From the sequence record OP380601.1: a stretch of 64,000 nucleotides of DNA. One strand, written 5' to 3'. The notes beneath the pieces were generated by a model. That model saw nothing but the letters and a program-made list of their open reading frames with translations. It did no database searches and was not told the origin of the DNA. The first letter of the stretch is position 1. Every line of letters starts with the position of its first letter. This document shows positions 9,565-39,319 of this stretch, one piece after another. The translations under genes and the position numbers were made by a program.

Positions 9565-9601
9565 TTGACACATACATGTGGGTATGAGATACTACCCACA
9601 T
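9565..9601 (+). promoter_or_regulatory. early promoter with stem around -10
   Basis: TTGACA-17-GATACT; ATGTGGGTA-TGAGATAC-TACCCACAT. Confidence 0.85.
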
Positions 9602-9620
9602 CAATTAACAGGGAAATATT

Positions 9621-9800
9621 ATGAAAGCGATTATTGATGTTAACAACGTACAGCTCCAAATTTCGAAACTGTCTGTAAAATATCACCCAAGTATCGTCGA
9701 TGTGATTATGGATATCGACCCCGAGATTTGTCCGGCTTTGGTTATTGAACATCACGAATATAAAACTATCATGAAATATATTGAGATGGGTAAACAATGA
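9621..9800 (+). CDS. hypothetical protein, 59 aa
   Basis: First ORF after promoter, AGGGA SD; below track cutoff. Confidence 0.7.
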   Translation: MKAIIDVNNVQLQISKLSVKYHPSIVDVIMDIDPEICPALVIEHHEYKTIMKYIEMGKQ

Positions 9801-10033
9801 AAAATATTCTTGATTTTCCAGTAGGAACACCCAGTAGTGAAATACCAACACATATGTTGTTTGCTCACGAACGGCGCATTATGGAAACCATCAATATTGT
9901 TTTTGGTGACCAACAAACATTCGTTGAATACGTTAAGGATAAAGATCCAGAAGTCTGGGCAGAAGAAATCCGAAATAAGTATGAAGAAGTAACAGGTTTT
10001 AAGTTCCCCCGTAATATTAAGTTTGGAGAATAA
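9797..10033 (+). CDS. hypothetical protein
   Basis: ATGA-coupled. Confidence 0.7.
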   Translation: MKNILDFPVGTPSSEIPTHMLFAHERRIMETINIVFGDQQTFVEYVKDKDPEVWAEEIRNKYEEVTGFKFPRNIKFGE

Positions 10034-10034
10034 A

Positions 10035-10535
10035 ATGAAAAACTATCCATATTTCCGGTCTTCTGTTTTGGATGTATTTTGTAAAAAGACTCGGTTATAT
10101 CCGCCTTCCGAAATCTTCTTTGGTCTTGTCAATCCAACCAGCCAACAGAAAAAGGCCGAGGTTCGGATCGCTGGTATCTGTGAAGAACTTTATGCTCTAG
10201 AAGTCGGTACATTGCGAGATCTCCGAACTGCCATGAATGATGTTCTGGTAATGGAGCAATTTCACGAAAATATCAAGTCGGTTGTCTTTATTGAGAAGTG
10301 CGCAATCCTTCAAGCCCATGTGAAGTATGCTATGGAGTGTCTAAATGCCATGATGAAGAAAGAACCGTTGTTGAAAGAATATTTCGATTGGGGCTTGACC
10401 AAGGAAGAAATCAATAGTACAATTTTCAATATTGTAGTCGCCAAGATTGATGATCTAGAGCCAAAGGATATTGCTACTATTCAAAATCCTATCATGACTT
10501 CAGAATACAACCGAATCAAAGGACTAAAGAAATGA
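10035..10535 (+). CDS. hypothetical protein
   Basis: GGAG SD. Confidence 0.8.
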   Translation: MKNYPYFRSSVLDVFCKKTRLYPPSEIFFGLVNPTSQQKKAEVRIAGICEELYALEVGTLRDLRTAMNDVLVMEQFHENIKSVVFIEKCAILQAHVKYAMECLNAMMKKEPLLKEYFDWGLTKEEINSTIFNIVVAKIDDLEPKDIATIQNPIMTSEYNRIKGLKK

Positions 10536-10732
10536 CCGGTAAATGTAATGTTCATTATCAAGATTACGATTCTAGCTATGAATTTTCAGATGATCACGCA
10601 CTGCCAGAAATCCAATCTATACAAATTACTTATGATGGTGGTCGATTTGGGGTTTACATTAACGGAGAAGTGTTTTATTATAATAGCTCAAGTGGTAATG
10701 ACTTTTCCTTTTCAATTAACAAGGTAGATTAA
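10532..10732 (+). CDS. hypothetical protein
   Basis: Coupled. Confidence 0.65.
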   Translation: MTGKCNVHYQDYDSSYEFSDDHALPEIQSIQITYDGGRFGVYINGEVFYYNSSSGNDFSFSINKVD

Positions 10733-10734
10733 TT

Positions 10735-11187
10735 ATGAAATTATCATTTTCCCAACTTAATGAAATGTGTGGTGGTAATGTTGCTGTAGTAGATGCATAC
10801 ACTTTTGGTAAAAACTTTGTTATCTGGAATGTATGTGGTTATGATAATGTGTATCATCAAGTAAAAGTTCCTCTTCAAAAGATCTCTCGTTCGTATGCTC
10901 TTGAACTTCTTGAGTATGACCCAGATCAACGAGTTCGGGATTATGAACTTGAACATGAATTACATCAATATGATATTGGGATCTTCATCGACGGAGATCA
11001 ATATTCTGCTTGTAATAGTAAACATAGTTTCCATTCTAACGATTATGAACGGTGGCCTATTAACTGGGATACACCAGTAAACAAGTTTAAACTCGGTCGT
11101 ATTGCAGAGCTGGAAGATAATATCCAGTTGCTGCGTCAAGAGATTGTAAAAATCAAAGATAGTATGAATGGAGATAATAAACAATGA
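10735..11187 (+). CDS. hypothetical protein, C-terminal coiled coil
   Basis: 150-aa ORF. Confidence 0.75.
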   Translation: MKLSFSQLNEMCGGNVAVVDAYTFGKNFVIWNVCGYDNVYHQVKVPLQKISRSYALELLEYDPDQRVRDYELEHELHQYDIGIFIDGDQYSACNSKHSFHSNDYERWPINWDTPVNKFKLGRIAELEDNIQLLRQEIVKIKDSMNGDNKQ

Positions 11188-11384
11188 TTAGCTTTATCTT
11201 GATGTTGATGTCGATTTACGTTATTGTATATTCTGTCTTGATTTTGAAAGGTTGTCATAAAAAATACTCACTACTCTGGCCTTTGGTTGCGTTTTGGGTA
11301 GTGGTCACTCTTATTCAGATTTGGATCGAAATGATTTGGGTAAAAATTCTGGATTTTAAAAATTATATTAGTAAAATTCGTTGA
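11184..11384 (+). CDS. small membrane protein
   Basis: Two hydrophobic helices. Confidence 0.65.
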   Translation: MISFILMLMSIYVIVYSVLILKGCHKKYSLLWPLVAFWVVVTLIQIWIEMIWVKILDFKNYISKIR

Positions 11385-11416
11385 CATATGATTGTGGGTA
11401 TGAGATATTACCCACA
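11381..11416 (+). promoter_or_regulatory. early promoter with stem around -10
   Basis: TTGACA-17-GATATT; TGTGGGTA-TGAGATAT-TACCCACA. Confidence 0.85.
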
Positions 11417-11440
11417 TAGACAACACATGAGGAATATATT

Positions 11441-11977
11441 ATGAATATTAAAATTACTACTTCTGGATTTTCTACCCTTGGTATGTTTGGGCAGAATCAC
11501 AGACTCATCGAAATTAACGGTGTTCCTTTGCTGTATACATGTACAGCTTATGACATAAATGATCCTCGGGTCTTTGTTCTGGAATCAAACCGTCAACTCA
11601 ACAATATTGTAAAACGTAATGTTGTGGTAGATACACAATGGGTTATGGATCATATTGATGAACTAACGGAAGAAGTAGAAAAACATAATGTTGTGGTAGA
11701 TACACAATGGGTTCTGGACCATATTGATGAACTCATTGAAGAAGCAGAAAAACATAATAGCGTCTATATCTATTGTGTTACTACTTCCGGTATGATTGTT
11801 CGTCCATCTAGAGAATCGTTCTCTTGGGGCGCCGCTAATTATATCTCCGGACATTCAACCGATACTTTCGATATGTCATCCGACCTATTTGTTAGTGTGA
11901 TGAAAGATATTATTGAGAATGACGAAATCACCCGATTCTATTTTGTGGATTCAATCACGGGAAAGGAACTCTCCTAA
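11441..11977 (+). CDS. hypothetical protein with 23-aa internal duplication
   Basis: NVVVDTQWVxDHIDELxEExEKH twice. Confidence 0.8.
   Translation: MNIKITTSGFSTLGMFGQNHRLIEINGVPLLYTCTAYDINDPRVFVLESNRQLNNIVKRNVVVDTQWVMDHIDELTEEVEKHNVVVDTQWVLDHIDELIEEAEKHNSVYIYCVTTSGMIVRPSRESFSWGAANYISGHSTDTFDMSSDLFVSVMKDIIENDEITRFYFVDSITGKELS
11618..11755 (+). repeat. 69-bp tandem duplication (2 copies)
   Basis: Units start at 11618 and 11687. Confidence 0.9.
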
Positions 11978-12201
11978 TGTTTCAACAAATATTTAAGAAA
12001 TTGTTTTGTTCTCATGATATGAAAATCATTTTCGAATACACATCCGAAAGTATTGCAGAACAACTTGCTCGGGTTAATTGTACCAAGATCACCCCCAGAT
12101 ATATCGATGACCTAACAAACATCACATCTAAAAAGCAGGTAGTCATTGTTTGTTGCAAAAATTGTGGTAAAATGAAGACTATCAAAACCAAATTCAATTA
12201 A
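11977..12201 (+). CDS. small Cys/His protein (DUF1660-like)
   Basis: KLFCSHDM...CCKNCGK. Confidence 0.6.
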   Translation: MFQQIFKKLFCSHDMKIIFEYTSESIAEQLARVNCTKITPRYIDDLTNITSKKQVVIVCCKNCGKMKTIKTKFN

Positions 12202-12212
12202 GGAATTCTCTC

Positions 12213-12845
12213 ATGTTCTCTATGTTTAATAAAACTACCAAGACCGATAAATCCGTTGCTATCTCTTCTCGTATTGATTGGATCACGAAGTACGTTGACA
12301 CCAAAGAAAAACTGGCGGTTTTTATCGATGCCATTGTTAACCCAAATTCTAATTATCTGGTGATGGGTCGTTCCCCGATTTCTCTAATCACTCCCGTGTT
12401 TGGAACCGAAAACCGAAAAGATCTATATTGCATTCGAAACCGTTTCAATGAAACCAAAATCACGGTTGAATCATACGGTGTTCGTATGTGGTTTAAGAAT
12501 AATTATACCACTCGATATATTCTGAAAGTTCTTACCAAATTGTTTAAGGTTAGTTCTGTTCGACTCACCAACGATCCCAAGTACCCATACAACGTAGTGA
12601 TCAAAATTGGTAAGCCATCCGGTGAAGTAGTTTTTGACACCAGCCTTGATGACAAGATTGAAACTATCATGAAAGATATCGAACTGTGTAAATCGCGAGT
12701 TCTTGTTCAAGATGAACTAATTAAAAAATATGGGTCTGAGGTTCGAGTAATCAATGAGAAGATCCAAAAAGAAACTAATTGCAAATACCATTGGTCTGAT
12801 AAAATTCGTGAACTCGAAAAACAAATCCGTGAAATTAAAGGTTAA
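12213..12845 (+). CDS. hypothetical protein, C-terminal coiled coil
   Basis: 210-aa ORF, AAGGA SD. Confidence 0.8.
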   Translation: MFSMFNKTTKTDKSVAISSRIDWITKYVDTKEKLAVFIDAIVNPNSNYLVMGRSPISLITPVFGTENRKDLYCIRNRFNETKITVESYGVRMWFKNNYTTRYILKVLTKLFKVSSVRLTNDPKYPYNVVIKIGKPSGEVVFDTSLDDKIETIMKDIELCKSRVLVQDELIKKYGSEVRVINEKIQKETNCKYHWSDKIRELEKQIREIKG

Positions 12846-12850
12846 CTAAA

Positions 12851-13303
12851 ATGAGTCATACTAAGATTAAACCCCATGTATTGGAAAAGGCGGTTAATAA
12901 CTATTTCCAGATTAATGAAGTTGCAAAGAAAATGGTTGATAAACGTCTAGCCGAAGTAATGGCAGAAACTAAAGTTGTCGGTTGGTTTTTTAAACGCACG
13001 GTCAATAAAGTTGCATATGACGAGGATCATAATCCATTCTCACAACCGCATATAATCAAATTTGAATTGATGCAAAAATTGCGTGAAGCTCTTTCTCTTA
13101 AGAGTAGTAAGATCCTCAATAAAGTATATGAGTATAAGTCGATGTGCGATGTATGCCCGTCAGGAGATTTTCACGATCAAGAAATTGGCTTTATATATGC
13201 AGATGAGGAAATGTGTTGGTTCATCGATCATATGAATAAAACTAATTCAATTGTGGTTGAAAAGGCTGCGGCTAAACTTTGGTGGAGTGAGTCTAATGAT
13301 TAA
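12851..13303 (+). CDS. hypothetical protein
   Basis: 150-aa ORF. Confidence 0.75.
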   Translation: MSHTKIKPHVLEKAVNNYFQINEVAKKMVDKRLAEVMAETKVVGWFFKRTVNKVAYDEDHNPFSQPHIIKFELMQKLREALSLKSSKILNKVYEYKSMCDVCPSGDFHDQEIGFIYADEEMCWFIDHMNKTNSIVVEKAAAKLWWSESND

Positions 13304-13688
13304 GAAGCTTAAATTTAAAAACCCCGCTGCGGCTCGCGCATGGGTAAACGAAATCCGAAGTAACTATTTCGGGTTCAATTTTAAAACCGCAACCGACCGA
13401 TATAAATTTGACGAGCTAACCCAAAAGGTATATGATTTTCCAGATCGGGTTATGGAGGTTGAAGTAGATGATCGGGGAATTGGAATTTCTATCGATGGTT
13501 GGTCTGTTGGTGAATCTTCTGGTGAATTCCTTTTGTATGAATACGATATCCTTGATGGTATGGACGAGGTAATCACGACCCCACCAGCAGATCCTTTTTA
13601 TGTAGAGCTTGCGGAATTGGCTAACAAATATAATATGGAACCACAAACCGCATGGCACAATATGTTCCGTAAGAGGGTTTCACAATGA
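13296..13688 (+). CDS. GoF-like domain protein
   Basis: KKLKFKNPAAARAWVNE. Confidence 0.5.
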   Translation: MIKKLKFKNPAAARAWVNEIRSNYFGFNFKTATDRYKFDELTQKVYDFPDRVMEVEVDDRGIGISIDGWSVGESSGEFLLYEYDILDGMDEVITTPPADPFYVELAELANKYNMEPQTAWHNMFRKRVSQ

Positions 13689-13981
13689 AGCTAGTAAGTC
13701 AAAATAACGTAGCTCCCACATTCGGGGTTGATTTCCATGGAGTTCGTCTAACCGTTCCCATGAAATATCTACATGGTTACTTGGCAATGGATTCTGATAT
13801 GGTTGTGTACGCATTTCAGAGCAAACCATTAACTGTACATTACTATGATTTTAAGGTACAATATTGGTCTAGTGAACGTGGGGATTCATGTGCGATTGCT
13901 ATAGTAGAAACCGATATGGACTGGAAGGATACTCTTGTTAGTCTACAAGATAACTCAGTAACAAAATACTTAGGAAATTAA
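13685..13981 (+). CDS. hypothetical protein
   Basis: Coupled. Confidence 0.75.
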   Translation: MKLVSQNNVAPTFGVDFHGVRLTVPMKYLHGYLAMDSDMVVYAFQSKPLTVHYYDFKVQYWSSERGDSCAIAIVETDMDWKDTLVSLQDNSVTKYLGN

Positions 13982-13982
13982 T

Positions 13983-14324
13983 ATGTTTTCAACTTTAGCT
14001 TTTAGTTTGACATACGCACAAATTCATTCAATCAAACCATACATTTATGATCTGTATATGGGATATACCCATTGGTTTACATATACCGATTTACATGGTA
14101 ATCAGCGTTTGGTGATTTGGTGTTATGATGAGTATGGAGATCTGAAATTAGTTTTCACCGATGGGTCTGAAGTAATGATTTTGGAAACCATTAAACGGTT
14201 TGTTAATTGTGGATCTACATATGGTACTGGTAAGATGCTGATGAGCATTCCAGAATTATATGAACATATGAAATCTGATGTATTTTTTATGTTTTGTGAT
14301 GGTCGTCTACAGGAAGCATTTTAA
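13983..14324 (+). CDS. hypothetical protein
   Basis: AGGA SD. Confidence 0.7.
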   Translation: MFSTLAFSLTYAQIHSIKPYIYDLYMGYTHWFTYTDLHGNQRLVIWCYDEYGDLKLVFTDGSEVMILETIKRFVNCGSTYGTGKMLMSIPELYEHMKSDVFFMFCDGRLQEAF

Positions 14325-14325
14325 T

Positions 14326-14553
14326 ATGGAAAAGAAAAATTCCGAACATATTCTAATTGGACTGGATCGGGTTCACACTATATCTATTATGATGGGCGAT
14401 CTTTTGGGGTCAGTAGATGGTGAAGACATTAGTGATGTACACGTTGCGTTAAAGCCCCATGCACATCTCTTACTGAGAGCGCAAGAAAGTATGGGTGAAC
14501 TGTATCAACTTCTTGGGAATGACCTGTATCACAGCGAGGAAGACTGGGAATGA
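14326..14553 (+). CDS. hypothetical protein
   Basis: AGGA SD. Confidence 0.7.
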   Translation: MEKKNSEHILIGLDRVHTISIMMGDLLGSVDGEDISDVHVALKPHAHLLLRAQESMGELYQLLGNDLYHSEEDWE

Positions 14554-15086: not shown

Positions 15087-15087
15087 T

Positions 15088-16672: not shown

Positions 16673-16708
16673 AAAGGGCTTGTCATACGATAGGCCCTTT
16701 GTTATGCT
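16673..16708 (+). terminator. terminator fused to early promoter
   Basis: AAAGGGCTTGTC-ATAC-GATAGGCCCTTT+GTT (G-U pairs); TTGTCA-17-TATGCT. Confidence 0.8.
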
Positions 16709-16740: not shown

Positions 16741-16956
16741 ATGTTTACTGTTACTATTAGTGAAACTGAAAAGATTTGTGTACATTCCAAATATGATTCT
16801 GGTACACACTTGGGCTTCATCGCAGGACTTCGTTCTAAAGGTGAATATACATCAGAAACCCCTGATGAGTTTTTGACCCCAGAACAAATCTCCAAGCTGG
16901 AAATGATTTTGTTGATGGAAATTAAAAAGATGGTTGACGAATACAAACGGGTATGA
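16741..16956 (+). CDS. hypothetical protein
   Basis: GAGG SD. Confidence 0.7.
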   Translation: MFTVTISETEKICVHSKYDSGTHLGFIAGLRSKGEYTSETPDEFLTPEQISKLEMILLMEIKKMVDEYKRV

Positions 16957-16978
16957 GACACTAGCTTTGTTGGAGACA
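16934..16978 (+). promoter_or_regulatory. early promoter, chimeric cassette
   Basis: TTGACG-17-GACACT; left half like 9565, right half like 21549. Confidence 0.7.
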
Positions 16979-17517: not shown

Positions 17518-17734
17518 TACCATCATTAACAGTCAGATTGGATTTGCGATCATCACAGCAATTTATCTATGTGCAATTATCTACAATGGGGTATCTACAT
17601 ATTACGAAACCCGTTCATCAAGTAAGCTGGAAACGTTCTTTATGTACACCATGCACATTCTAGTGTGTGGGCTATGTGTGAAGGGTTATATGATAATTCT
17701 AAGTTTTGTTGATTTCAGTAAAATGATTGGTTGA
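17510..17734 (+). CDS. small membrane protein
   Basis: Two hydrophobic helices. Confidence 0.7.
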   Translation: MIDTIINSQIGFAIITAIYLCAIIYNGVSTYYETRSSSKLETFFMYTMHILVCGLCVKGYMIILSFVDFSKMIG

Positions 17735-17780
17735 CATACAAGACTGATATTGAGATACTAATTCCGTAGACAGAAACCCC
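17731..17780 (+). promoter_or_regulatory. early promoter
   Basis: TTGACA-17-GATACT, GTAGACAGAAACCCC leader. Confidence 0.85.
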
Positions 17781-17798
17781 ATAGAAAAGGAAAATATC

Positions 17799-18005
17799 AT
17801 GACTACTAAAGAAATTCTTCGTTCTGTATATGGTTCTTCTTCCTATTCAAATAACATCAAAGATTATGGTATTGTAGACCATCTGGATCACATAGAGATG
17901 GAACGTTCTATCTATGATGAAACTGGTGTTAACGTGTACAACACCCATGTGAAGGTTTCTACTGTTGCCGAACTCGAAGCACTGATAGAGAAAAATCGTT
18001 GTTGA
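17799..18005 (+). CDS. acyl-carrier-like small protein (weak)
   Basis: GIVDHLDHIEM..IYDETGV..KVSTVAELEALIE resembles the ACP fold but lacks the DSL serine. Confidence 0.35.
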   Translation: MTTKEILRSVYGSSSYSNNIKDYGIVDHLDHIEMERSIYDETGVNVYNTHVKVSTVAELEALIEKNRC

Positions 18006-18052
18006 CACCAATAATCAAGTTTGAGATACTAATCCCGTAGACAGAAACCCCC
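18002..18052 (+). promoter_or_regulatory. early promoter
   Basis: TTGACA-17-GATACT, same leader as 17731. Confidence 0.85.
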
Positions 18053-18075: not shown

Positions 18076-18294
18076 ATGACTGCTCAAATCTTCTTCTCTA
18101 CCCGTGCTAATGCTCGTCAGGCTTCTTTCGGTAAGATGACTGATAATGGCTCTACTGCTCCTAAGCGTTGGGCTCGGAGTGTTGAGGTAACTTCCACTGG
18201 CAACAAAACCCTGTCGGTCGGTAAAGGTTCCCGCAACAACGGTTACAAGGCCGTTACCATCATCACCAAGAAAACCAAAACTCTGGTTCACTAA
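18076..18294 (+). CDS. small basic protein, paralogue of 42515
   Basis: FFSTRANARQASFGKMTDNG..KRWAR..ITKKTKTLVH. Confidence 0.85.
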   Translation: MTAQIFFSTRANARQASFGKMTDNGSTAPKRWARSVEVTSTGNKTLSVGKGSRNNGYKAVTIITKKTKTLVH

Positions 18295-20448: not shown

Positions 20449-20676
20449 ATGAACTTCTTCCATTATCTCGTTGTGATGAAAACTGTTAATGGTATGGAAA
20501 ACTTTCTTGTATTTGCTATGAACCATTCTAAGGCCAAGGAAAAGGTTATTGGTTATCTGACTGATGAATATATACCATTCAGCAAAGACTATCCTCGTAA
20601 TGAAACGGTTCGAGTTGCAAATTCCCAAGTTGAAGAAATGAAAAATCGTTCTGATATCCAGACACTATATGTATGA
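20449..20676 (+). CDS. hypothetical protein
   Basis: GAGG SD. Confidence 0.7.
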   Translation: MNFFHYLVVMKTVNGMENFLVFAMNHSKAKEKVIGYLTDEYIPFSKDYPRNETVRVANSQVEEMKNRSDIQTLYV

Positions 20677-20725
20677 GTTTATGTGTGATAAAATTCGTCA
20701 CTAGGTGTTTGATGAGGTATAAGAT

Positions 20726-20965
20726 ATGAAAAACATTGATATTATGAAATTGATGGGTTATCAACTGTTCAACTCAAAAGAAGAATTCGATGGGGTGATT
20801 GGTGTCTGACAAGAAAGTTATATTTATTATGGAGATGAAGATTTCCCTTGCTGGATGAAGCAGGTAGAAGAAATTGATGTATCATCCAATATTAAAACTA
20901 TTTTGGTATTTGACCGTATCGAGATGGAAACCGTAGAGATGATGGATAAAATTATTAAAGTTTAG
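20726..20965 (+). pseudogene. gene interrupted by in-frame TGA at 20807-20809
   Basis: GAGG SD; both halves resemble 17275..17517. Confidence 0.65.
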
Positions 20966-20993
20966 TTGACTCCATAATCCATTCTGGTAAGAT
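20966..20993 (+). promoter_or_regulatory. early promoter
   Basis: TTGACT-16-(TGG)TAAGAT; CCATTCTGGTAA shared with 45060 and 58778. Confidence 0.7.
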
Positions 20994-21023
20994 AATCATA
21001 TACCAACTGAGAAGGAATACAGA

Positions 21024-21302
21024 ATGAAACTCCAACGTGAAAGCATTAACCTCGGGTCTGAGTATCGTGGTCAATGGTGTTTCTCCATTCACGATAAGAG
21101 TGAAGATGCTTTGGTTGCTGTTGAAACCGCTCTGAATTCCATCGTGATTGGTGTCCGTGGTGATGGTCGTAATATCACATGGAGAGACTACTGTGATGAC
21201 TGCGCAATCTATGATGAGGGTATCGGTTGTGGCTACATGATCCCAGTGGATATGGTAGATGAATTCAAGGCCGATTTTAAGAAAGTGAAAAAGTTGAAAT
21301 AA
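21024..21302 (+). CDS. hypothetical protein
   Basis: AAGGA SD. Confidence 0.8.
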   Translation: MKLQRESINLGSEYRGQWCFSIHDKSEDALVAVETALNSIVIGVRGDGRNITWRDYCDDCAIYDEGIGCGYMIPVDMVDEFKADFKKVKKLK

Positions 21303-21548: not shown

Positions 21549-21587
21549 TTGACCTAATGACTAAGCTATGAGATACTAGCTTTGTTG
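21549..21587 (+). promoter_or_regulatory. early promoter with stem around -10
   Basis: TTGACC-17-GATACT; AAGCTA-TGAGATAC-TAGCTT. Confidence 0.85.
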
Positions 21588-21614: not shown

Positions 21615-21881
21615 ATGCAAAACATATACCCCGATTTCTATTCCAGAGATATCGATATTAATATCTGGCGCATTCTGGTTGCTACCAATCCAACTCAGGT
21701 TACTAAGAATGGCGAGATCCGCATGTTCAAAGTAAACCAGCATTGTACAGTTACTTGTGTAGATACATATGCTACAATCTTCGCTACCAATGCGGATGTG
21801 GCTAACACTGTCATCGATATGGCTATCATGATGGAAGAATACACAGACCGCATGGTTAAATCCGTGGTCGATGTTTACTAA
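21615..21881 (+). CDS. hypothetical protein
   Basis: AAGGAG SD. Confidence 0.8.
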   Translation: MQNIYPDFYSRDIDINIWRILVATNPTQVTKNGEIRMFKVNQHCTVTCVDTYATIFATNADVANTVIDMAIMMEEYTDRMVKSVVDVY

Positions 21882-22695: not shown

Positions 22696-22899
22696 ATGAC
22701 CGTAAGGACCATTTATTTCGCTTTCGTTGATAAAGGTTATGCGAATCCAAAGACCAATCTTATTGACCCAATCTTATCTTTGGAAAATGTTGACATTTCT
22801 TCTACTACTGGAATGGACATTTATCGCGACCAATCCGGAGCTGTTTACGTCTATCATGACCGTTTCCATGGTGATTTCGACTTTATGCCAAATTGTTGA
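22696..22899 (+). CDS. hypothetical protein
   Basis: GGAG SD. Confidence 0.7.
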   Translation: MTVRTIYFAFVDKGYANPKTNLIDPILSLENVDISSTTGMDIYRDQSGAVYVYHDRFHGDFDFMPNC

Positions 22900-23047
22900 A
22901 ACGTCACTCGGTGTAACGAGGGGTTTTTCATAGTTTTGCACCATTATAGTGCAATGTACATTTATCCCTCTATCCCGCGCTGGTACTGGGTTTCTTTTAA
23001 CATTTATCCAAATATTTTTAAACAGCAACTAATTTTGTATAAATCAA

Positions 23048-23103
23048 AATGTTTTAATTCATAAACCGAATGTTTGATTCATGAAAGAAAATGTTTGATT
23101 CAT
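23048..23103 (+). repeat. three direct repeats at 21-bp spacing
   Basis: AATGTTT(TA/G)ATTCAT at 23048, 23069, 23090. Confidence 0.75.
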
Positions 23104-23123
23104 TTTTATCGTTGGTGTACTAT
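23095..23123 (+). promoter_or_regulatory. early promoter overlapping third repeat
   Basis: TTGATT-17-TACTAT. Confidence 0.55.
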
Positions 23124-23150
23124 ATCTTTACTGAATTAGGACAATAAATT

Positions 23151-23432
23151 ATGAAATCTGTTTTGCAATATATAAAAGAGAATCCGGATGCCTTTATGGG
23201 TGCTGCTGAATCACGTAGCCATACTAGTCCTAGCCATACTAATATGATGAATCATAAACGGTTGATGGTTTATATCCATAGTGAGAATTGGGTTGAAGTT
23301 GAACAACTGATTACTGATGCGTTTTACTATAAACCGCTTGAGGGGGTTGTGCTGCTTGCCGAGCGTTATGGTCTGGATAGTGATGATTGGTTAGGTGCTT
23401 ATGATGCTTATGAAGCTGGGAATATTGTATGA
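23151..23432 (+). CDS. hypothetical protein
   Basis: AGGA SD. Confidence 0.75.
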   Translation: MKSVLQYIKENPDAFMGAAESRSHTSPSHTNMMNHKRLMVYIHSENWVEVEQLITDAFYYKPLEGVVLLAERYGLDSDDWLGAYDAYEAGNIV

Positions 23433-24133: not shown

Positions 24134-24466
24134 TTGAATATGAAACTAAATGCGGATATGATTGAAAAGATTTGGAATAGTAATGTCAAACTAAATGAAT
24201 GGTTTATTCGTGGTAAAGATAACACTATTTATTTTATTGATGTTGAGCAACGACATTTAGTTAAGCATATCATTAAAGGAAATCAACAAAAGTTGGTGTT
24301 TGACAGTCCATTTGAGACGGTCGATATCAGCAAGCTGGTTGATATGATTGATATGGAAATAATTCCAGATACACCAGAGGGGATTATCCTTTTCCTTAAT
24401 GAAATTGCGTCATGGTTTGAGATGCGATATGCAGATAAACAAATGAAAAAATCTATTGACCTTTAG
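24134..24466 (+). CDS. hypothetical protein
   Basis: GAGG SD. Confidence 0.75.
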   Translation: MNMKLNADMIEKIWNSNVKLNEWFIRGKDNTIYFIDVEQRHLVKHIIKGNQQKLVFDSPFETVDISKLVDMIDMEIIPDTPEGIILFLNEIASWFEMRYADKQMKKSIDL

Positions 24467-24527
24467 ATCCGGTTATGCGATACTCGTTTTGTCGATTGGG
24501 ACACAACTTTTTGAGGAATGCATCATG
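24456..24527 (+). promoter_or_regulatory. early promoter/leader/SD cassette, copy 1
   Basis: TTGACC-17-GATACT; 24473-24527 matches 24974-25028 at 54/55. Confidence 0.9.
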
Positions 24528-24719
24528 AAAATACTATGTGAGTTTAAATACGTTCCTAACAATACCAAGTTTTATGTTCTTCGTTACGTAGGTGCGCCGG
24601 TATATGATAGTATTAGTTTCTTCAAAAAAGATTCTAATATCTGTAAGGATGTATATCAAGAATGGTACTCTCCTGTTGAGTTTAGTGATGACCATCCTTG
24701 TTGGTATTTTGAGGGTTGA
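24525..24719 (+). CDS. hypothetical protein, 64 aa
   Basis: Start within cassette after GAGG SD. Confidence 0.75.
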   Translation: MKILCEFKYVPNNTKFYVLRYVGAPVYDSISFFKKDSNICKDVYQEWYSPVEFSDDHPCWYFEG

Positions 24720-24965
24720 TTGATGATTCATGGTGTGATTGTTCGTGAAACAAAACATGGAAAAGATATTGTTTACTCCCATGATAATGGTTTTACTCGT
24801 TATGTAGTTCAAATTTGTGATGGTGGTTATGCTTGTTATATCAATGAGAGTCGTTGCTTTAAACGAAAAACTCATGACTTAATGATGTCTAATTGTGGTA
24901 TTGATTACAAAGAGATCGAACCTTTAAAGTGGTCTAAAGAATATTATAGAAATTGTTTGATTTAA
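24720..24965 (+). CDS. hypothetical protein
   Basis: GAGG SD. Confidence 0.7.
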   Translation: MMIHGVIVRETKHGKDIVYSHDNGFTRYVVQICDGGYACYINESRCFKRKTHDLMMSNCGIDYKEIEPLKWSKEYYRNCLI

Positions 24966-25028
24966 GTTTATCATTATGCGATACTCGTTTTGTCGATTGG
25001 GACACAACTTTTTGAGGAATGTATCATG
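24957..25028 (+). promoter_or_regulatory. early promoter/leader/SD cassette, copy 2
   Basis: TTGATT-17-GATACT; 55-bp direct repeat. Confidence 0.9.
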
Positions 25029-25880
25029 GAAATGAACAAGTGGGAATCTCAGGGTTTTGGTAAGGCTCCTTTCCGTTGTGTTGGTATGTTTAAGATGCCA
25101 AACAAAGATACTGCTACTATGCAAGATTATGCTGCACTTCCTCAAGGTTATGGTGCTGGCTCTTGTCATGTATGTGGTACTGGTATCATTTACAACTACA
25201 TGATCCATGATGCTAGTGGTAAAAAGTTTGTTGTTGGTTGTGAGTGTGTTAATTATACCAACGATACCAAATTGATTGATGAAGTTAAGGCCGAACGTAA
25301 GGCTTTTAATAACGCACAGAAGGCCCTAGAAACTCGTAAGCGCAACGAAGCAGAGCGGGAGCGTAATGGTGGGTTGACTGATAAAGAAATCGCTCAGAAG
25401 GTCGCACAGGCTGAATGGGATGCTAAACGAGAAGCGTATTTTGATACTCACAAAGAATTGTTTGATGCTGGTCTTGCTACTGGTTATGAGTGGATTGAAG
25501 AGATTGTAGAATCTTGCTGCCATTACTGTTCTATGTCTCCGGCTCAAAAGACTGCTATTGAGAATGGTATTGCAGATCACCAGTTCAAGATGAATGCAAA
25601 GAATGAATTCTTTGGTGCTGTTGGTGAGCGTGTGAAGAAAATGGAATTGACTACCACGTTTGAAATGTGTGTGAAGGTTCCTCAGTTCTATAATGACTAT
25701 GCGGTTTACATCGCGGTCATGGTTGACTCAGAAGGTCGCAGTTTCAAATATATGGGTAGCTCTTTGAATTCCATCCCTAAGAAAGGGGAAACTGGTATTC
25801 TTTCATTCAGTATCAAAGCTCATGAAGAATATAAGGGTACTAACCAAACAGTTATCCAGCGTCCTAAGCTTCACGATTGA
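25026..25880 (+). CDS. Zn-finger plus OB-fold-like nucleic-acid-binding protein
   Basis: CHVCG...VGCEC; C-terminal FFGAVGER..SIKAHEEYKGTNQTVIQRPK. Confidence 0.6.
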   Translation: MEMNKWESQGFGKAPFRCVGMFKMPNKDTATMQDYAALPQGYGAGSCHVCGTGIIYNYMIHDASGKKFVVGCECVNYTNDTKLIDEVKAERKAFNNAQKALETRKRNEAERERNGGLTDKEIAQKVAQAEWDAKREAYFDTHKELFDAGLATGYEWIEEIVESCCHYCSMSPAQKTAIENGIADHQFKMNAKNEFFGAVGERVKKMELTTTFEMCVKVPQFYNDYAVYIAVMVDSEGRSFKYMGSSLNSIPKKGETGILSFSIKAHEEYKGTNQTVIQRPKLHD

Positions 25881-25897: not shown

Positions 25898-25933
25898 AAA
25901 GGGCTTGTCTTCGGATAAGCCCTTTGTTATTAT
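25898..25933 (+). terminator. cUUCGg terminator fused to early promoter
   Basis: AAAGGGCTTGTC-TTCG-GATAAGCCCTTT+GTT; TTGTCT-17-TATTAT. Confidence 0.85.
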
Positions 25934-25969
25934 ACCTACATCGAAACGAAACACGGAAAGGAAAACGAA

Positions 25970-28700: not shown

Positions 28701-28738
28701 TTGACAGAGTATCCCCGTTTGTGGGATACTCTCTTTGT
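28701..28738 (+). terminator. terminator-like hairpin fused to early promoter
   Basis: TTGACA-18-GATACT; AGAGTATCCC/GGGATACTCT + CTTTGT. Confidence 0.8.
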
Positions 28739-33644: not shown

Positions 33645-33907
33645 ATATGAAAAATATTATTGAAAATATTGAAGTTGGTACACAGTTTTGGGACGGTCGT
33701 TACGGGCCGTTTGTATGTACACAAAAACCTGAGTTTCAAAAAGTTAATGATGGTCAAGATGAAGGATATTTTTGGCTAGGTAAAGACTCTCACGGTTCTA
33801 TGTGTGAATTTCTTTGGATTGAGAAATATTCTCATTACGGTCCGAAAGTGTATCTTGAACAGGCATATTTTAGTCCGGAAGAACTTAAGAAGGCTATGTT
33901 AAAATGA
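33641..33907 (+). CDS. hypothetical protein
   Basis: Coupled ORF. Confidence 0.7.
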   Translation: MNMKNIIENIEVGTQFWDGRYGPFVCTQKPEFQKVNDGQDEGYFWLGKDSHGSMCEFLWIEKYSHYGPKVYLEQAYFSPEELKKAMLK

Positions 33908-34413: not shown

Positions 34414-34416
34414 TTG

Positions 34417-34455
34417 TTGCATTCAAAGCCCGTTCGTGTAGAATGGGCTTTGTTG
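34417..34455 (+). terminator. terminator hairpin with -10 box in loop
   Basis: TTGCAT-16-TAGAAT; AAAGCCCGT/ATGGGCTTT + GTTG. Confidence 0.7.
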
Positions 34456-34474
34456 ATTCAGAGGAGATAATGTT

Positions 34475-34675
34475 ATGAACCATTACGTTGAACTGAACAT
34501 GAAGAAGTTGGAAACCCTTGGTAAAAAGGCCGCGTATTGTCGCCACGAACTGACGAAAGACCTTGACGTTTGGGCTAAAAACGAATATGCTTGTATTCTA
34601 GCTGATACGGAAGTAGAGATTAAAGATACTCAAACCCGAATCGAACAAATGCTTAATGATCCGTGGTTTAACTGA
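34475..34675 (+). CDS. small coiled-coil protein
   Basis: GAGGAG SD. Confidence 0.7.
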   Translation: MNHYVELNMKKLETLGKKAAYCRHELTKDLDVWAKNEYACILADTEVEIKDTQTRIEQMLNDPWFN

Positions 34676-34685
34676 GGAAATTATT

Positions 34686-34922
34686 ATGAAAACTTTTGAA
34701 CTTCTCCCTACTGGCGCTTTCGTTGTTGAAATCGAATGGGTTTCAGGTCATAGTGAAGAAATGGCAGAAAGTTTCTTCAAGCTTCACGAAATGGAATATG
34801 AAAAAGTTTCTATTGGTTGGGGTAACTCTTTCATCGTCAAGTCAGGTCAGTTCAAAGGGTTCTATGACGTTCACGCAAACCCAGCCGACCGAACCATATG
34901 TATTCTTCAAGATATAGGATAA
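34686..34922 (+). CDS. hypothetical protein
   Basis: GAGGA SD. Confidence 0.75.
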   Translation: MKTFELLPTGAFVVEIEWVSGHSEEMAESFFKLHEMEYEKVSIGWGNSFIVKSGQFKGFYDVHANPADRTICILQDIG

Positions 34923-34927
34923 AATTT

Positions 34928-35191
34928 ATGAAACGTAAAATTCGCAGTACCGGAAGTTTTAATAACGATCCTTGGTTCTTCCGCCACATCAACAAGATCA
35001 TTACAGGTATTTTTATCTTTGTTTTTGTTGGGATCATTTGTCAAATGGCATTGATTGGTTATGCCACCATGAATGTGCAGGAAAAGGGCCTTAAAGGCGT
35101 TGTTGAGTCAGTTTGGTGTGGTAGTAGCCAGACCTCGGAAGAATGCAAGGAATCGATTCGTAAGACACTTCAAGAGGGTCTGTCGAAATGA
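34928..35191 (+). CDS. membrane-anchored protein
   Basis: Single TM helix. Confidence 0.7.
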   Translation: MKRKIRSTGSFNNDPWFFRHINKIITGIFIFVFVGIICQMALIGYATMNVQEKGLKGVVESVWCGSSQTSEECKESIRKTLQEGLSK

Positions 35192-35538
35192 GTACACTCC
35201 ATCCTTATAAGTTTATGACTAATGACCAAATCAATGTTTTGTTCACCCAAGTTTATTATGGTCTTCAACATTGGGATTATAATGAACAATCTCATGCATT
35301 GACCTATCATGATGGAACTACTTTTCCTATTAAAAACTGGTGTGATAATGATTCTATTGCAATTGAACTTATTATGAATCATAATATCAGTGTGAATCGT
35401 GAAGATGGTGAGTCTTTCGCTTTCTTTGGTGAACAACTCTCAGAAATTTATGGTGATGTGTGTGGATACGATTTTGTGTGTGCGGATGGTAACATCATCA
35501 AAGCACTGATTATCGTTTACCTGATGATGAATTCATAA
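35188..35538 (+). CDS. NinX-like (ABA sandwich) protein
   Basis: NWCDNDSIAIELIMNHNISV motif. Confidence 0.5.
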   Translation: MSTLHPYKFMTNDQINVLFTQVYYGLQHWDYNEQSHALTYHDGTTFPIKNWCDNDSIAIELIMNHNISVNREDGESFAFFGEQLSEIYGDVCGYDFVCADGNIIKALIIVYLMMNS

Positions 35539-35550
35539 TGAGGTTTTAAT

Positions 35551-35802
35551 ATGTCGATTAAAAAACGTTATGACCGTGCTATGAGTTGGTTGGAAACTAT
35601 GATGGAGCAAGAACCAGATCATATGAAGTTTGCGATCAAAACCGATATGCCAAATTTACGGGTCTTGCGTAATGAAGCAGAACTCTGGAAAGACTATAAA
35701 GAAAATCCGGATTATATTCTTGGTGGTGTTAACCACGATCCTAACCATCCAGACAATCTATCAGCTATTGTGTGGAACGACTTCAAGAGAAAATATCAAT
35801 GA
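35551..35802 (+). CDS. hypothetical protein
   Basis: GAGG SD. Confidence 0.75.
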   Translation: MSIKKRYDRAMSWLETMMEQEPDHMKFAIKTDMPNLRVLRNEAELWKDYKENPDYILGGVNHDPNHPDNLSAIVWNDFKRKYQ

Positions 35803-36224
35803 ATACTAAACTTAATGAATTCGTAAAAAAGATTACAATCGGTCATTACACTCTTAGTATGAAAGATGGGTCTATTAAGTATGTACAACGATCCAGCGAG
35901 ATTAAAGATCTGGATACCGGTATTAAATACACTCGCACTTCGTTTCAAGAGGCATTTGGAGATGATATAGTTTCAATACAATATGGTATTGTATCTGACA
36001 ACTTCGAACGTTGGAAACATATTTACGCAGATGATTGTGCGGGCAAATTTGTTATTGATGGTGATGAATTTAAGTTTGAAATCAAGCAATATTATACTGG
36101 GGATGATGAGGAAACATATGTTAATGTGTTTTTGTATCATCAAATTCCTTGGAATGGGGTTGTGTTGTCTGATACATTTGAATCATTGAAAGATTCAGTT
36201 TCTCATGTAGAGGTGGAATGCTAA
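35799..36224 (+). CDS. hypothetical protein
   Basis: Coupled ORF. Confidence 0.75.
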   Translation: MNTKLNEFVKKITIGHYTLSMKDGSIKYVQRSSEIKDLDTGIKYTRTSFQEAFGDDIVSIQYGIVSDNFERWKHIYADDCAGKFVIDGDEFKFEIKQYYTGDDEETYVNVFLYHQIPWNGVVLSDTFESLKDSVSHVEVEC

Positions 36225-36445
36225 TGGTTATCGATTTTCGTGAGTTTAGCGACTTAACCCCAACAGAACCGGGATATTATCTATGGAATCCATCATATAC
36301 TGATGTAACTATGATCCACGTTTACCGATATCCAGCTAAAGATGAATATGGTATCCATTGGGAATCATATCTAGGTGTTCCTATGATGGGAGGTCGAAAC
36401 GTTGGCAATCTAAAAGGGTCTTTCCTTAAATTGGAGTTTGTTTAA
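36218..36445 (+). CDS. hypothetical protein
   Basis: GAGG SD. Confidence 0.7.
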   Translation: MLMVIDFREFSDLTPTEPGYYLWNPSYTDVTMIHVYRYPAKDEYGIHWESYLGVPMMGGRNVGNLKGSFLKLEFV

Positions 36446-36749
36446 TGCAATATATTTTGACAGAAGAAGAATATAAAGAACTTAAGAAAAACAAATTCTT
36501 GAACTTGACATTCAAAAGAATAAGCTACAGAAATTGTGTACAAAGATCGCAAATACCATGCCGGTTTTCTATTGGAATAATGAAGAAGCTTCTATTTGGG
36601 GATGTATTCATAACGAACAAATTGAACGTGAAGAGTATCTAGGTGAAGATGATGTTCCTAAAGGTGTTGAAATTCAATTAACCCCCGGTTATTGTGATCA
36701 GTGTCCGGTAATTGATATTTGCCCAAGTCATAAACGATGGAGTAAGTAA
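36445..36749 (+). pseudogene. frameshifted Cys-rich protein
   Basis: MQYILTEEEYKELK continues as EKQILELDIQKNKLQKLCTKIA..WGC..YCDQCP..CP only after a -1 shift near 36484-36492. Confidence 0.65.
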
Positions 36750-37462
36750 TGGCTAAACTATCAAAACAGCAAATGAAACTTCACAATCAGGCAATGGATC
36801 TGGTTCATAGTGATAAAGTTCTAACATGGGATGAACGGATGTTTATTCTTGAAAATTTTCAAGAGGGGTTCAACCAAGCCAATAGCTTGGCAGGTGCATT
36901 CTTTACTCCCCTCATGTTATCCCGCGATACTTGTATTGAAATCAATAGTAATCAGTCTGTAGTGGATTTGTGTGCTGGTATTGGTGGTCTTTCGTTCTGG
37001 CTAGATCGTGATAACGAGATTACATGTGTCGAACTCAACCCAAATTATATCGAGGTTGGTAAGCGTGTGAATCCGTATGCTAAATGGATCCAGATGGACG
37101 CATTAGAGTATTGTGAAACCACTACAGACCGATTTGTAAACGCACTTAGTAATCCACCTTTTGGAAATATCAAGACCTCGGATTATAAAGGTCTTTACAC
37201 CGGTTCAGATTTCGAGTATAAGATTATAGAGGCTGCTGGTAAAGTTGCTGAGTTCGGAGTTTTCATCATTCCTCAATCTAGTGCCCCATTCCGTCTTAGT
37301 GGTGTTAGGGAATATTATGATAAGATGGAAATAAAATGTAAAAAGTTTGTGGATCAAACTGGTATTGAGATGACACCGGGTTGTGGGGTAGATACCTCAA
37401 TGTATTTAAAACAGTGGCATGGTGTTAGTCCAATGTGTGAAATTGTTACAGTGGAGTATTAA
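36749..37462 (+). CDS. N6-adenine DNA methyltransferase
   Basis: GAFFTP (X), VVDLCAGIGG (I), CVELN (II), LSNPPF (IV). Confidence 0.85.
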   Translation: MAKLSKQQMKLHNQAMDLVHSDKVLTWDERMFILENFQEGFNQANSLAGAFFTPLMLSRDTCIEINSNQSVVDLCAGIGGLSFWLDRDNEITCVELNPNYIEVGKRVNPYAKWIQMDALEYCETTTDRFVNALSNPPFGNIKTSDYKGLYTGSDFEYKIIEAAGKVAEFGVFIIPQSSAPFRLSGVREYYDKMEIKCKKFVDQTGIEMTPGCGVDTSMYLKQWHGVSPMCEIVTVEY

Positions 37463-37464
37463 AA

Positions 37465-37644
37465 ATGAAAGAGTATGTAGTTATTAAAGAGGTTTCCGGT
37501 TATATTCGTGGCAATCAAACCCAAACAGTTTTAGCCAATTCAGAAGAGGAAGCGATTGAGATCGCAAGGGATCTTGGGGATTGGGGAGAATTGGATATCG
37601 TTCGGGATGACACAGAAACGCAAGATATCTGGTGTATGGGATAA
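37465..37644 (+). CDS. small protein, 59 aa
   Basis: GGAG SD; hand-translated. Confidence 0.65.
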   Translation: MKEYVVIKEVSGYIRGNQTQTVLANSEEEAIEIARDLGDWGELDIVRDDTETQDIWCMG

Positions 37645-37656
37645 GGTAAAAATCTT

Positions 37657-37830
37657 ATGTGGATTTTGATATTGACATTGAGTTTTCAATCAGGCGCTGC
37701 TATAGAAATGGAAAGATTTCTTAGCAAAAAGAATTGTGAAGATGCTGCAAGTTTGTGGACAAAACAAGTTTATAACACAATACACGAATATGATAAAAAG
37801 AAAGTAATCGCTTTGTGTGTTGAGAGGTAA
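37657..37830 (+). CDS. small secreted/membrane protein with two Cys, 57 aa
   Basis: MWILILTL..F..K.NCEDAA...ALCV. Confidence 0.6.
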   Translation: MWILILTLSFQSGAAIEMERFLSKKNCEDAASLWTKQVYNTIHEYDKKKVIALCVER

Positions 37831-37837
37831 TGGAACT

Positions 37838-38080
37838 ATGACAAATGAAATGGTACTTCGTGCCAAATACACAGAAACACAGAATGATCTTGCTGAGAAT
37901 CTATCTACCATCCGCAGTGTTGAAGCACTTTATCAAGAGTGTATTGTAGATTTGAAAGTCTCACGGGTTGGTATGAAATTTCTTTCTAGGATCAACGATC
38001 TATATGAACATCGTATGAACAACCTTGTTCCGGAAAATCGTAGGGCACATAGAAAACTTATGGTGGAATTGTTTAAATGA
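37838..38080 (+). CDS. hypothetical protein
   Basis: In-module ORF. Confidence 0.7.
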   Translation: MTNEMVLRAKYTETQNDLAENLSTIRSVEALYQECIVDLKVSRVGMKFLSRINDLYEHRMNNLVPENRRAHRKLMVELFK

Positions 38081-38358
38081 AACACACCTATCAAGTGGTT
38101 AGTGAAAAGACCGTAGAGATTACAGCTTTACAATTTGTAAAGAAATATCTTCGTCAAGTTAACGTGTGGAATGACGAATATGACTTCTATGTTGAAGACA
38201 CATTTGCGCGTGGGGATGGATTCTTGATTCGAAAATTTTCTCTACCTAAAAAGCTTTTCTCTATGGATATCACGAAGTTCAATCATGAAAATGACAGAAC
38301 TCAGGTTCTGATCCGACATATGGCTTCAGTCATTGAAGAAAATTATAAAAGTTATTGA
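38077..38358 (+). CDS. hypothetical protein
   Basis: Coupled. Confidence 0.7.
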   Translation: MKHTYQVVSEKTVEITALQFVKKYLRQVNVWNDEYDFYVEDTFARGDGFLIRKFSLPKKLFSMDITKFNHENDRTQVLIRHMASVIEENYKSY

Positions 38359-38383
38359 CCTATGTTTTTGGATATGAGATAGT
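38355..38383 (+). promoter_or_regulatory. early promoter
   Basis: TTGACC-17-GATAGT, ATCGAAAC leader. Confidence 0.8.
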
Positions 38384-38412
38384 GTCTATATCGAAACGCA
38401 GGAGATGACCCC

Positions 38413-38826
38413 ATGAAAAACGAAAAAGCTTTCACCAAGAACCAAATCGTAGTTATGTTCCGCCCTACTTACGGGGAAGGTTGTGGAGAAGGTACTTGGG
38501 GTTGGAGACGTGCTAGGGTAGTCTCTTGCGGTAAAGTAAAAATGACTGTAGAGACTCTTGATGGTGTGATGTTGGGGCGAAACTATGAGCCTACAAAAGA
38601 CACCCACGATCAATACGGTGATTTGAATCGTGTCATTTTTATGGATGATATGGAAGATGATGATATTGTTAGCAAAGCTCTTGATTTTGCTAACATAGAT
38701 ATCGAGTCTGCAAAAGAACGGTATAACTACCAAATAAAACATAGTACGAACGAATCTTACATCGAATCAACTAAAACTCTATTGAACCATTTGTTTACAA
38801 TTTCCGCCCGAGCGGTTTCCCTTTAA
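38413..38826 (+). CDS. hypothetical protein, SH3-like N-terminus
   Basis: AGGAG SD. Confidence 0.75.
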   Translation: MKNEKAFTKNQIVVMFRPTYGEGCGEGTWGWRRARVVSCGKVKMTVETLDGVMLGRNYEPTKDTHDQYGDLNRVIFMDDMEDDDIVSKALDFANIDIESAKERYNYQIKHSTNESYIESTKTLLNHLFTISARAVSL

Positions 38827-38837
38827 AAGGATAATTT

Positions 38838-39047
38838 ATGAAAATCAAATTTATTAACGAACAGGCCATCCAAGACTTTCTAAATTTTGGTTCGGAAACG
38901 GGGGAAATTGTACACAATAGCCTTATTGTTGAAATGTATAAACTTTCCCCGTTTGAGGTGGTCAAGCGTAATTGTTGTGGCTATAGTAACAAGTCTATTT
39001 ATATTGCAGATGAAGAGATGCAATTTTTTGAAATAATTGAGGAATGA
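38838..39047 (+). CDS. GoF-like domain protein
   Basis: MKIKFINEQAIQDF..HN..PFEV..DEEMQFFEII. Confidence 0.65.
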   Translation: MKIKFINEQAIQDFLNFGSETGEIVHNSLIVEMYKLSPFEVVKRNCCGYSNKSIYIADEEMQFFEIIEE

Positions 39048-39048
39048 A

Positions 39049-39279
39049 ATGAAAATTCAGTTTAAATCTGAGGAAGCAATGGAAGAGTTTCGAATGGCTT
39101 TGGGTGTTGACCAAAGTTCCAGAGATCACAATTCCAAATTCGTTCAAAAATACGGAATGTCTGTAATCGAAATCACACACACTGATGAATATTGGTGGGA
39201 TATTATTGATTCAAATGGCGGTCTTGAATATACAGTCGATATCGACTGTGAAGGACACCTTTTCAATATTATCAAATAA
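39049..39279 (+). CDS. GoF-like domain protein
   Basis: MKIQFKSEEAMEEF..HN..EGHLFNII. Confidence 0.65.
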   Translation: MKIQFKSEEAMEEFRMALGVDQSSRDHNSKFVQKYGMSVIEITHTDEYWWDIIDSNGGLEYTVDIDCEGHLFNIIK

Positions 39280-39285
39280 AAACAG

Positions 39286-39319
39286 TTGACGGAAATGATG
39301 GGATATGAGACTATATCCC
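39286..39319 (+). promoter_or_regulatory. early promoter with stem around -10
   Basis: TTGACG-17-GACTAT; GGGATA-TGAGACTA-TATCCC. Confidence 0.8.

Follow-up and report, generated by a model that had tools for sequence, protein, structure and literature searches.

The window analysed here, a 64,000-nucleotide stretch of sequence record OP380601.1, contains a set of early promoters whose extended -10 box is predicted to lie in the loop of a hairpin. Between bases 9000 and 12000 it is 100% identical to Aeromonas phage avDM6 (OP380601.1), with the same coordinates. This phage is a T4-like myovirus classified in Straboviridae, Ishigurovirus; phages 65 and 65.2, likewise of Aeromonas, are the closest relatives, at approximately 85-89% identity. 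A literature search found no paper dealing with avDM6. The first 50 kb carry 138 annotated plus-strand open reading frames (ORFs), small and every one hypothetical, separated by gaps of approximately 55 nt, and synteny to phage 65 runs up to ndd, gene 52 and asiA. The small hypothetical ORFs and the point where synteny ends therefore identify the segment as the early hyperplastic region. The promoter cassettes are confined to this part, a census made without regard to stems finding none in the core-gene part past 48 kb. Each cassette begins with the stop codon of an upstream gene, which is always co-directional and ends at the -35, and closes with a Shine-Dalgarno site and a start codon. The 25 nt preceding the -35 are 80% A+T, against 63% window-wide. 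The dispersed repeats of the region, direct-repeat families D2-D4, D7-D9, D14 and D19, proved to be the promoter cassettes themselves. Rfam covariance models run against the whole window gave no match at the gathering score, and neither did a tRNA scan of the window give any match.

As the preliminary description of this DNA had stated, four promoters share one geometry (Table 1). In all of them a 17-nt spacer separates a TTGAC(N) -35 motif from an extended -10 that reads TGnGAYnnT; an 8-nt loop spans positions -15 to -8, and the T at -7 opens the right arm. At the first site the stop codon of the preceding ORF (9562-9564) directly adjoins the -35. Folded as RNA, the four hairpins have z-scores of -2.2 to -3.9; as single-stranded DNA they are of modest stability (-3.9 to -7.2 kcal). 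The loop of the 39300 hairpin could close to 6 or 4 nt. A weak version at 38369, also announced in that description, is present and depends on G·U pairs: in the strict register the hairpin (38369-38388) has one Watson-Crick pair, or six counting wobbles, and its RNA fold has seven pairs including three G·U. The claim that the stems differ completely held in part. The 9576 and 11393 hairpins share a stem core and are paralogous copies (family D2), so that the stems amount to three independent ones rather than four. Moreover, the inner TA/TA pairs belong to the consensus of the promoter, the T at -7 being fixed and the TA before the TG occurring in stemless sites too, which reduces the freely varying parts to 7, 6, 4 and 4 bp; these remaining parts do vary. 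Three of the four hairpins are not followed by a U tract (one or two T per 8 nt of tail, except at 21563), and a terminator scan of the window called none of the four terminator-like. A terminator acting in the antisense direction was considered and rejected: the minus strand has no T tract and the region no minus-strand genes.

The possibility that such stems arise by chance was examined in a census in which sites were chosen by the -35 and extended -10 alone, regardless of pairing. Among the 19 sites of the window, stems in the focal register had 9, 8, 6 and 6 pairs and all others two or fewer. Pairing each left arm with the right arms of the other sites gave an expectation, itself inflated by paralogs, of 0.22 sites with at least six pairs, against 4 of 19 observed. 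Non-redundant sites pooled from the window, phage 65, phage P19 (Ceceduovirus) and IMG/VR numbered 78, and 6 of them had at least six pairs; the permuted mean was 0.54 and none of 2000 permutations reached 6. Thus, the hairpins with the -10 in the loop are real and not due to chance, neither control having yielded the observed number of stems.

The stem is an optional part of these promoters. About 15 promoters share the core, and only four or five have a stem in this register; the core occurs stemless at 16934, 17731, 18002, 24456, 41849, 42443 and 45739. At 16934-16970 the absence of a stem follows from the apparently chimeric nature of the promoter, whose left half resembles the 9565 site and whose right half the 21549 site. 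When every intergenic gap was folded, the focal sites turned out to be a subset of the hairpins present. The register varied: the -10 lies in the loop at four or five sites and in the right arm at two, the -35 is enclosed at two, and the hairpin stands downstream of the -10 at one. In all, the folds of 12 out of 33 intergenic regions had a z-score below -2. In generic scans for promoters and terminators the counts were close to those expected from shuffled sequence; the scans did flag the 25898 and 41307 hairpins as terminator-like. On manual reading the hairpins at 28706, 16673 and 34424 also resemble terminators, each combining a GC-containing stem-loop with a T-rich tail.

Table 1. Promoters and hairpins of the avDM6 hyperplastic region, listed with the -10-in-loop sites ahead of the other classes.
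Coordinates	Strand	Feature	Hairpin	RNA dG (kcal/mol)	z-score	Remarks
9565-9601	+	Early promoter, -10 in loop	9 bp, 9576-9601	-12.5	-3.1	-35 at 9565-9570; -10 GATACT at 9588-9593; extended -10 forms the 8-nt loop
11381-11416	+	Early promoter, -10 in loop	8 bp, 11393-11416	-12.5		Paralog of the 9565 cassette (family D2); upstream stop codon within -35 hexamer
21549-21582	+	Early promoter, -10 in loop	6 bp, 21563-21582, then T-rich tail	-6.4
39286-39319	+	Early promoter, -10 in loop	6-7 bp, 39300-39319	-10.2		Right-hand copy beside three-ORF cassette
38355-38391	+	Early promoter, -10 in loop, weak	G·U-dependent	-5.1		Left-hand copy beside cassette 38413-39279
28701-28732	+	Early promoter, second geometry	10 bp, 28706; right arm is the -10; T-rich tail	-15.7	-4.6
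41301-41340	+	Early promoter, second geometry	10 bp, 41307; right arm is the -10; then TTTTTGT	-15.9	-5.1	Terminator-like
16673-16708	+	Second promoter family, TTGTCA-N17-TATGCT	12 bp, enclosing -35; T-rich tail			2 G·U pairs; sense strand 10 kcal more stable than antisense
25898-25935	+	Second promoter family, TATTAT -10	12 bp, over -35; T-rich tail			Terminator-like
34424-34452	+	Intergenic hairpin	12 bp; T-rich tail			From gap folding
45060-45116	+	Early promoter	GC-rich, 45099-45116, downstream of -10			From gap folding
16934-16962	+	Promoter with focal core, apparently chimeric	None			Left half like 9565, right half like 21549; family D2
17731-18030	+	Promoters 17731 and 18002 with focal core	None			Either side of one ORF; family D3
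24456-25033	+	Promoter copies 24456 and 24957				60-nt 3' halves 97% identical; around ORFs 24525-24965; family D4

Comparison with phage 65 supplied the ortholog covariation that the preliminary description had called for. In the 11393 hairpin the outermost pair changes from T-A in avDM6 to C-G in phage 65, and in the 34424 hairpin an A-T pair becomes T-A; both changes are compensatory. The 9576 stem is identical in the two phages, though the adjacent spacer differs, and at 28706 and 45099 the stems are kept and the loops changed. At 21563 phage 65 has lost the outer pair, retaining 5 bp, and has an altered loop; the ORF downstream of this hairpin in avDM6 (21615-21881) is absent from phage 65. 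Altogether, substitutions affect approximately 5 positions out of some 158 in the stems (about 3%), four of them making up the two compensatory pairs, against a divergence of 11-15% in the aligned blocks. A search of IMG/VR for further orthologs of the gene behind promoter 11381 found none, so that the covariation comes from one close relative and from paralogs. The two compensatory changes, in stems that are otherwise largely invariant, support the proposal that selection acts on pairing and not on a sequence-specific protein operator.

The same comparison revealed differences in gene content. Around 38413-39279, 24525-24965 and 17799-18005, avDM6 has two promoter copies and phage 65 a single chimeric one, the corresponding promoter-flanked indels being 38406-39301, 24473-24973 and 17750-18020. 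In place of 38406-39301 phage 65 carries a chimeric 38355/39286 promoter, whose crossover falls inside the GATATGAG common to both copies, where the left arm ends and the loop begins. Its single copy of the 24456/24957 pair forms a 9-bp hairpin that includes three G·U pairs. This comparison showed that the repeated cassettes serve, in addition, as homology for the insertion and loss of small gene cassettes.

Hairpin promoters of the same layout were found beyond the avDM6/phage 65 pair. Phage P19 has a variety of hairpins like that of avDM6, including three with the -10 in the loop and new stems (19925, 24264 and 39897). At one P19 site of the right-arm type, the left arm is matched to a different -10, TATCCT. 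The orthologs of one cassette in phage 65 and P19 both retain a stem, with two or three G·U pairs. A scan of IMG/VR for the core motif returned 81 sites, of which 75 had 0-2 extra pairs; the tail of the distribution comprised sites with 5, 7, 8 and 10 extra pairs, whose stems are unrelated and which lie on unrelated contigs, each directly after the stop codon of a co-directional ORF. On the reverse strand of the 76-kb contig 3300050151_000071, positions 9436-9480, a 12-bp stem closes the same TGAGATAC loop; this hairpin has an endolysin-like gene on one side and a DNA polymerase gene on the other. The contig does not resemble the hyperplastic region of T4-type phages, so that the layout extends beyond T4-like phages.

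Cassettes of this type are known from coliphages phi1 and RB49 as PeSLs (promoter-early stem-loops), in which an A/T-rich stretch, an early promoter of sigma70 type plus a stem-loop are followed by a Shine-Dalgarno sequence and a start codon (Arbiol et al. 2010, PMC2839356). Five subclasses are distinguished by the position of the stem-loop, the commonest having it between the -35 and -10 or overlapping the -10; reporter and inverse-PCR data from phi1/RB49 gave evidence of terminator and promoter activity and of recombination between copies, and junctions of RB49 mini-circles were located in the loop (Arbiol et al. 2010, PMC2839356). T4/PST and KVP40/nt-1 were later added to the PeSL carriers (Comeau et al. 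2014, PMC4122927), and a mention of PeSL-like motifs, not accompanied by data, exists for the Aeromonas phages 44RR2.8t, 25 and Aeh1. Folding the phi1 gaps yielded several PeSLs with the -10 hexamer in the loop and a right arm that begins at -8 or -7, which makes the -10-in-loop geometry a described PeSL subclass. Hence, the preliminary description named the right analogue, its published layout matching that of the avDM6 sites, but its remark that a stem around the -10 was not recognised from PeSLs does not stand: the overlapping subclass listed by Arbiol et al. (2010) is of this kind and phi1 displays it.

The correspondence extends to most aspects of the cassettes. In avDM6 as in the coliphages they are intergenic, lie in a hyperplastic region between small, mostly orphan ORFs, and comprise A/T-rich upstream DNA, a near-consensus sigma70 promoter with a 17-nt spacer, a stem-loop, a Shine-Dalgarno sequence and an ATG. 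The position of the stem-loop is variable in both avDM6 and phi1, the -10-in-loop subclass included; mutually similar copies flank cassette indels between close relatives in avDM6 too; and a CGAAAC motif past the -10 is common to avDM6 and phi1. The differences are those of host and lineage (Aeromonas, Emmerichvirinae) and of sequence: the avDM6 -10 is GATACT with a TG extension whereas that of phi1/RB49 PeSLs is TATAAT, the avDM6 stems are less G/C-homopolymeric, and their loops are of 8 nt as compared to 4-6 nt in phi1. Promoter and terminator activity and mini-circles were shown for phi1/RB49, whereas the avDM6 cassettes are known from sequence. On these grounds the avDM6 hairpin promoters are to be classed as PeSL-type cassettes of a further phage lineage. 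With them, Aeromonas phages of the genera Ishigurovirus and Ceceduovirus join the lineages carrying PeSLs, and the evidence goes beyond that of the original PeSL papers in three respects: compensatory changes between orthologs, a sense-strand bias of wobble pairs (see below), and the repeated appearance of the -10-in-loop layout in phage contigs that are unrelated to one another, as are their stems. Such motifs should be of use in annotation, marking early transcription units and likely points of gene-cassette exchange.

As to how the hairpin acts, the reading we favour as probable is that these PeSL-type cassettes work through RNA, as an attenuator or a 3'-end protector in transcripts that read through from upstream. 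The transcript initiated at the promoter itself would begin downstream of the right arm; consequently, the hairpin could exist as RNA only in read-through from the upstream co-directional gene. There it might attenuate or terminate transcription onward. Alternatively, it might block 3'-to-5' exonucleases and thus protect the 3' end of the upstream cistron after cleavage farther downstream. In T4, RegB cleaves GGAG Shine-Dalgarno sites in early mRNAs, and host 3' exonucleases act afterwards. The geometry, too, would find an explanation: in a gap of approximately 55 nt with an immutable -35 and extended -10, complementary arms would have to come from the spacer (-24 to -16) on one side and the discriminator (-7 to +2) on the other, and with no other positions free the register would be fixed and the -10 left in the loop. 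We postulate as a testable rule that a hairpin sharing a gap of this size with a promoter uses the promoter's free positions. That the hairpin is optional among promoters with the same core, and variable in position, supports the PeSL interpretation. Between the two options put forward in the preliminary description, a hairpin in read-through RNA fits best.

Wobble pairs provided further evidence. In the intergenic hairpins of avDM6, P19 and phi1, internal wobbles comprised 16 G·T and 2 A·C, against 90 and 63 in coding-region hairpins (Fisher p = 0.019); internal here means flanked by two Watson-Crick pairs, a rule tightened after artefactual end extensions had been seen, so that the p-value needs care. 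Terminator-like hairpins were 6-10 kcal more stable in the sense than in the antisense strand, and folding energies across all 33 intergenic regions displayed no overall sense bias. Several observations weigh against the RNA interpretation. With a looser hairpin definition the wobble counts became 26:12 versus 181:141, a non-significant difference (p = 0.14-0.17). The asymmetry comes mostly from hairpin classes other than the focal one, for which wobble evidence is limited to 38369 and a single site each in phi1 and P19; the four focal stems are perfect palindromes and carry no strand information. Three of the four -10-in-loop hairpins are devoid of a U tract and hence are not canonical intrinsic terminators; what role they might have as RNA, whether attenuator, pause site or 3' protector, is a matter of guesswork. 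Finally, roughly 11 of 20 indels between avDM6 and phage 65 touch a cassette by hand count, a modest enrichment over other gene junctions. Among known RNA elements, intrinsic terminators are matched by the hairpins at 41307 and 25898, which satisfy the hairpin-plus-T-tract criteria of the scan, and not by the -10-in-loop hairpins, where a T tract follows the stem only at 21563 and the stem there is weak. The 3'-terminal stabiliser hairpins of polycistronic mRNAs, for example those of the REP type, resemble them in being stable hairpins just past a stop codon with no U tract, and differ in that the avDM6 hairpin overlaps a promoter and its stabilising role is putative.

Other explanations place the function of the hairpins in DNA. 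That they form on supercoiled DNA, or on the DNA that is single-stranded during recombination-dependent replication, and there either mask the -10, turning specific early promoters off, or provide structure-specific crossover points that mobilise PeSL cassettes, would account for the constant register relative to the -10 and for the loop crossover of the phage 65 chimera; we consider it unlikely. Taken as a recombination device, the hairpins or cruciforms would be preferred points of breakage or crossover, for example for a structure-specific nuclease, and would move cassettes between PeSL copies. The position of the chimera's crossover, at the end of the left arm within GATATGAG, and the several indel boundaries located at cassettes agree with such a device, as do perfect palindromes that are equally good on either strand. 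However, the same crossovers are accounted for by plain homologous recombination between promoter copies identical over 10-60 nt, the 17731/18002 and 24456/24957 pairs, both stemless, flank indels too, and the sense-strand wobble bias favours RNA for the hairpin class as a whole, so that this version appears improbable as well. Far more doubtful is the N4-like mechanism proposed in the preliminary description, whereby a DNA hairpin or cruciform would offer a single-stranded -10 to sigma70 and activate early transcription on freshly injected DNA. The early promoters of N4 are served by a virion-carried RNA polymerase and have a 5-7 bp stem with a 3-nt loop of specific bases. The avDM6 sites share with them a promoter element within a small DNA hairpin, and the constant register, the compensated pairing and the modest stability as single-stranded DNA would suit the idea. 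Nonetheless, their loop is of 8 nt and consists of the sigma70 extended -10, the phage is T4-like with asiA in the syntenic region (no search was aimed at a virion RNA polymerase), and N4 promoters require the virion polymerase and the 3-nt loop. Furthermore, the identical TGAGATACT core is mostly stemless, in the window and at 75 of 81 IMG/VR sites, which, assuming that the stemless promoters are active, implies that the stem is not part of promoter recognition. The hairpin pairs the -7 T and unpairs the -15/-14 TG, the opposite of how sigma70 reads them, since the TG is recognised as duplex; an 8-nt loop with arms of 6-9 bp makes a poor cruciform; the gain per strand as DNA is a mere 4-7 kcal; hairpins of other registers fill the same intergenic niche; and wobbles in the hairpin class are biased towards the sense strand.

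These physical objections apply equally to a supercoil-dependent cruciform that would mask the -10 and turn the early promoters off. The geometry would indeed sequester the -10, and Horwitz and Loeb are said to have described in 1988 an E. coli promoter engineered so that extrusion of a cruciform represses it; yet the wobble-bearing 38369 version would mispair on one strand and the downstream genes give no specific hint, leaving this mechanism very improbable. A different view is that the short palindromes are functionless by-products of copying between paralogous cassettes or of template switching. Two of the four stems are paralogous, those at 21563 and 39300 extend just 4 bp beyond the consensus TA/TA, and the 16934 and phage 65 chimeras lost their stems without obvious harm. 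Neutrality is nevertheless hard to reconcile with two compensatory double changes, with a stem substitution level of about 3% where the region diverges by 11-15%, and with the recurrence of the geometry in unrelated contigs with unrelated stems of 7-12 bp; we hold it to be quite unlikely. Least credible is that the inverted repeats are operators of a dimeric DNA-binding regulator. Promoter-centred inverted repeats are typical of operators, but the arms are wholly different between sites and complementarity alone is kept, for which reason the protein operator was rejected. The preliminary interpretation as a whole is thus partly supported, the PeSL-type cassette with a hairpin acting in read-through RNA remaining the probable reading.

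A motif of the form (T/C)CGAAAC was noticed approximately 10 nt past the -10 of many avDM6 early promoters, and also in coliphage phi1. In the window it is found at 25941, 28738, 32981, 38391, 39322 and 41337; its enrichment is limited to the position after the -10, with none window-wide. By its placement in the two phages it is a conserved, predicted start-of-transcript motif across distant T4-like genera.

Additional repeats and structures were observed in the window. A 67-nt direct repeat (8048-8114 and 47132-47198, 96% identical) lies in two long gaps, one at either end of the small-ORF region as a whole. It contains an A/T-rich palindrome of approximately 13 bp, and one copy is recognisable in P19; the gaps that hold it are 94-98% identical in phage 65, above the level of the surrounding genes. 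ORF 11441-11977 harbours a tandem duplication of 69 nt (11611-11748, 90% identical; D11), and repeats with a 129-nt period at 53128-53994 (D5/D6) are syntenic with a minus-strand tail-fibre gene of phage 65. Two long gaps, 20676-21024 (347 nt) and 22899-23151 (251 nt), have no annotated gene and a strong predicted structure. Lastly, the small ORFs 18076-18294 and 42515-42736 are paralogous (79% identical over 206 nt), each preceded by a promoter cassette and 5' leader that are likewise related (D1, D14).

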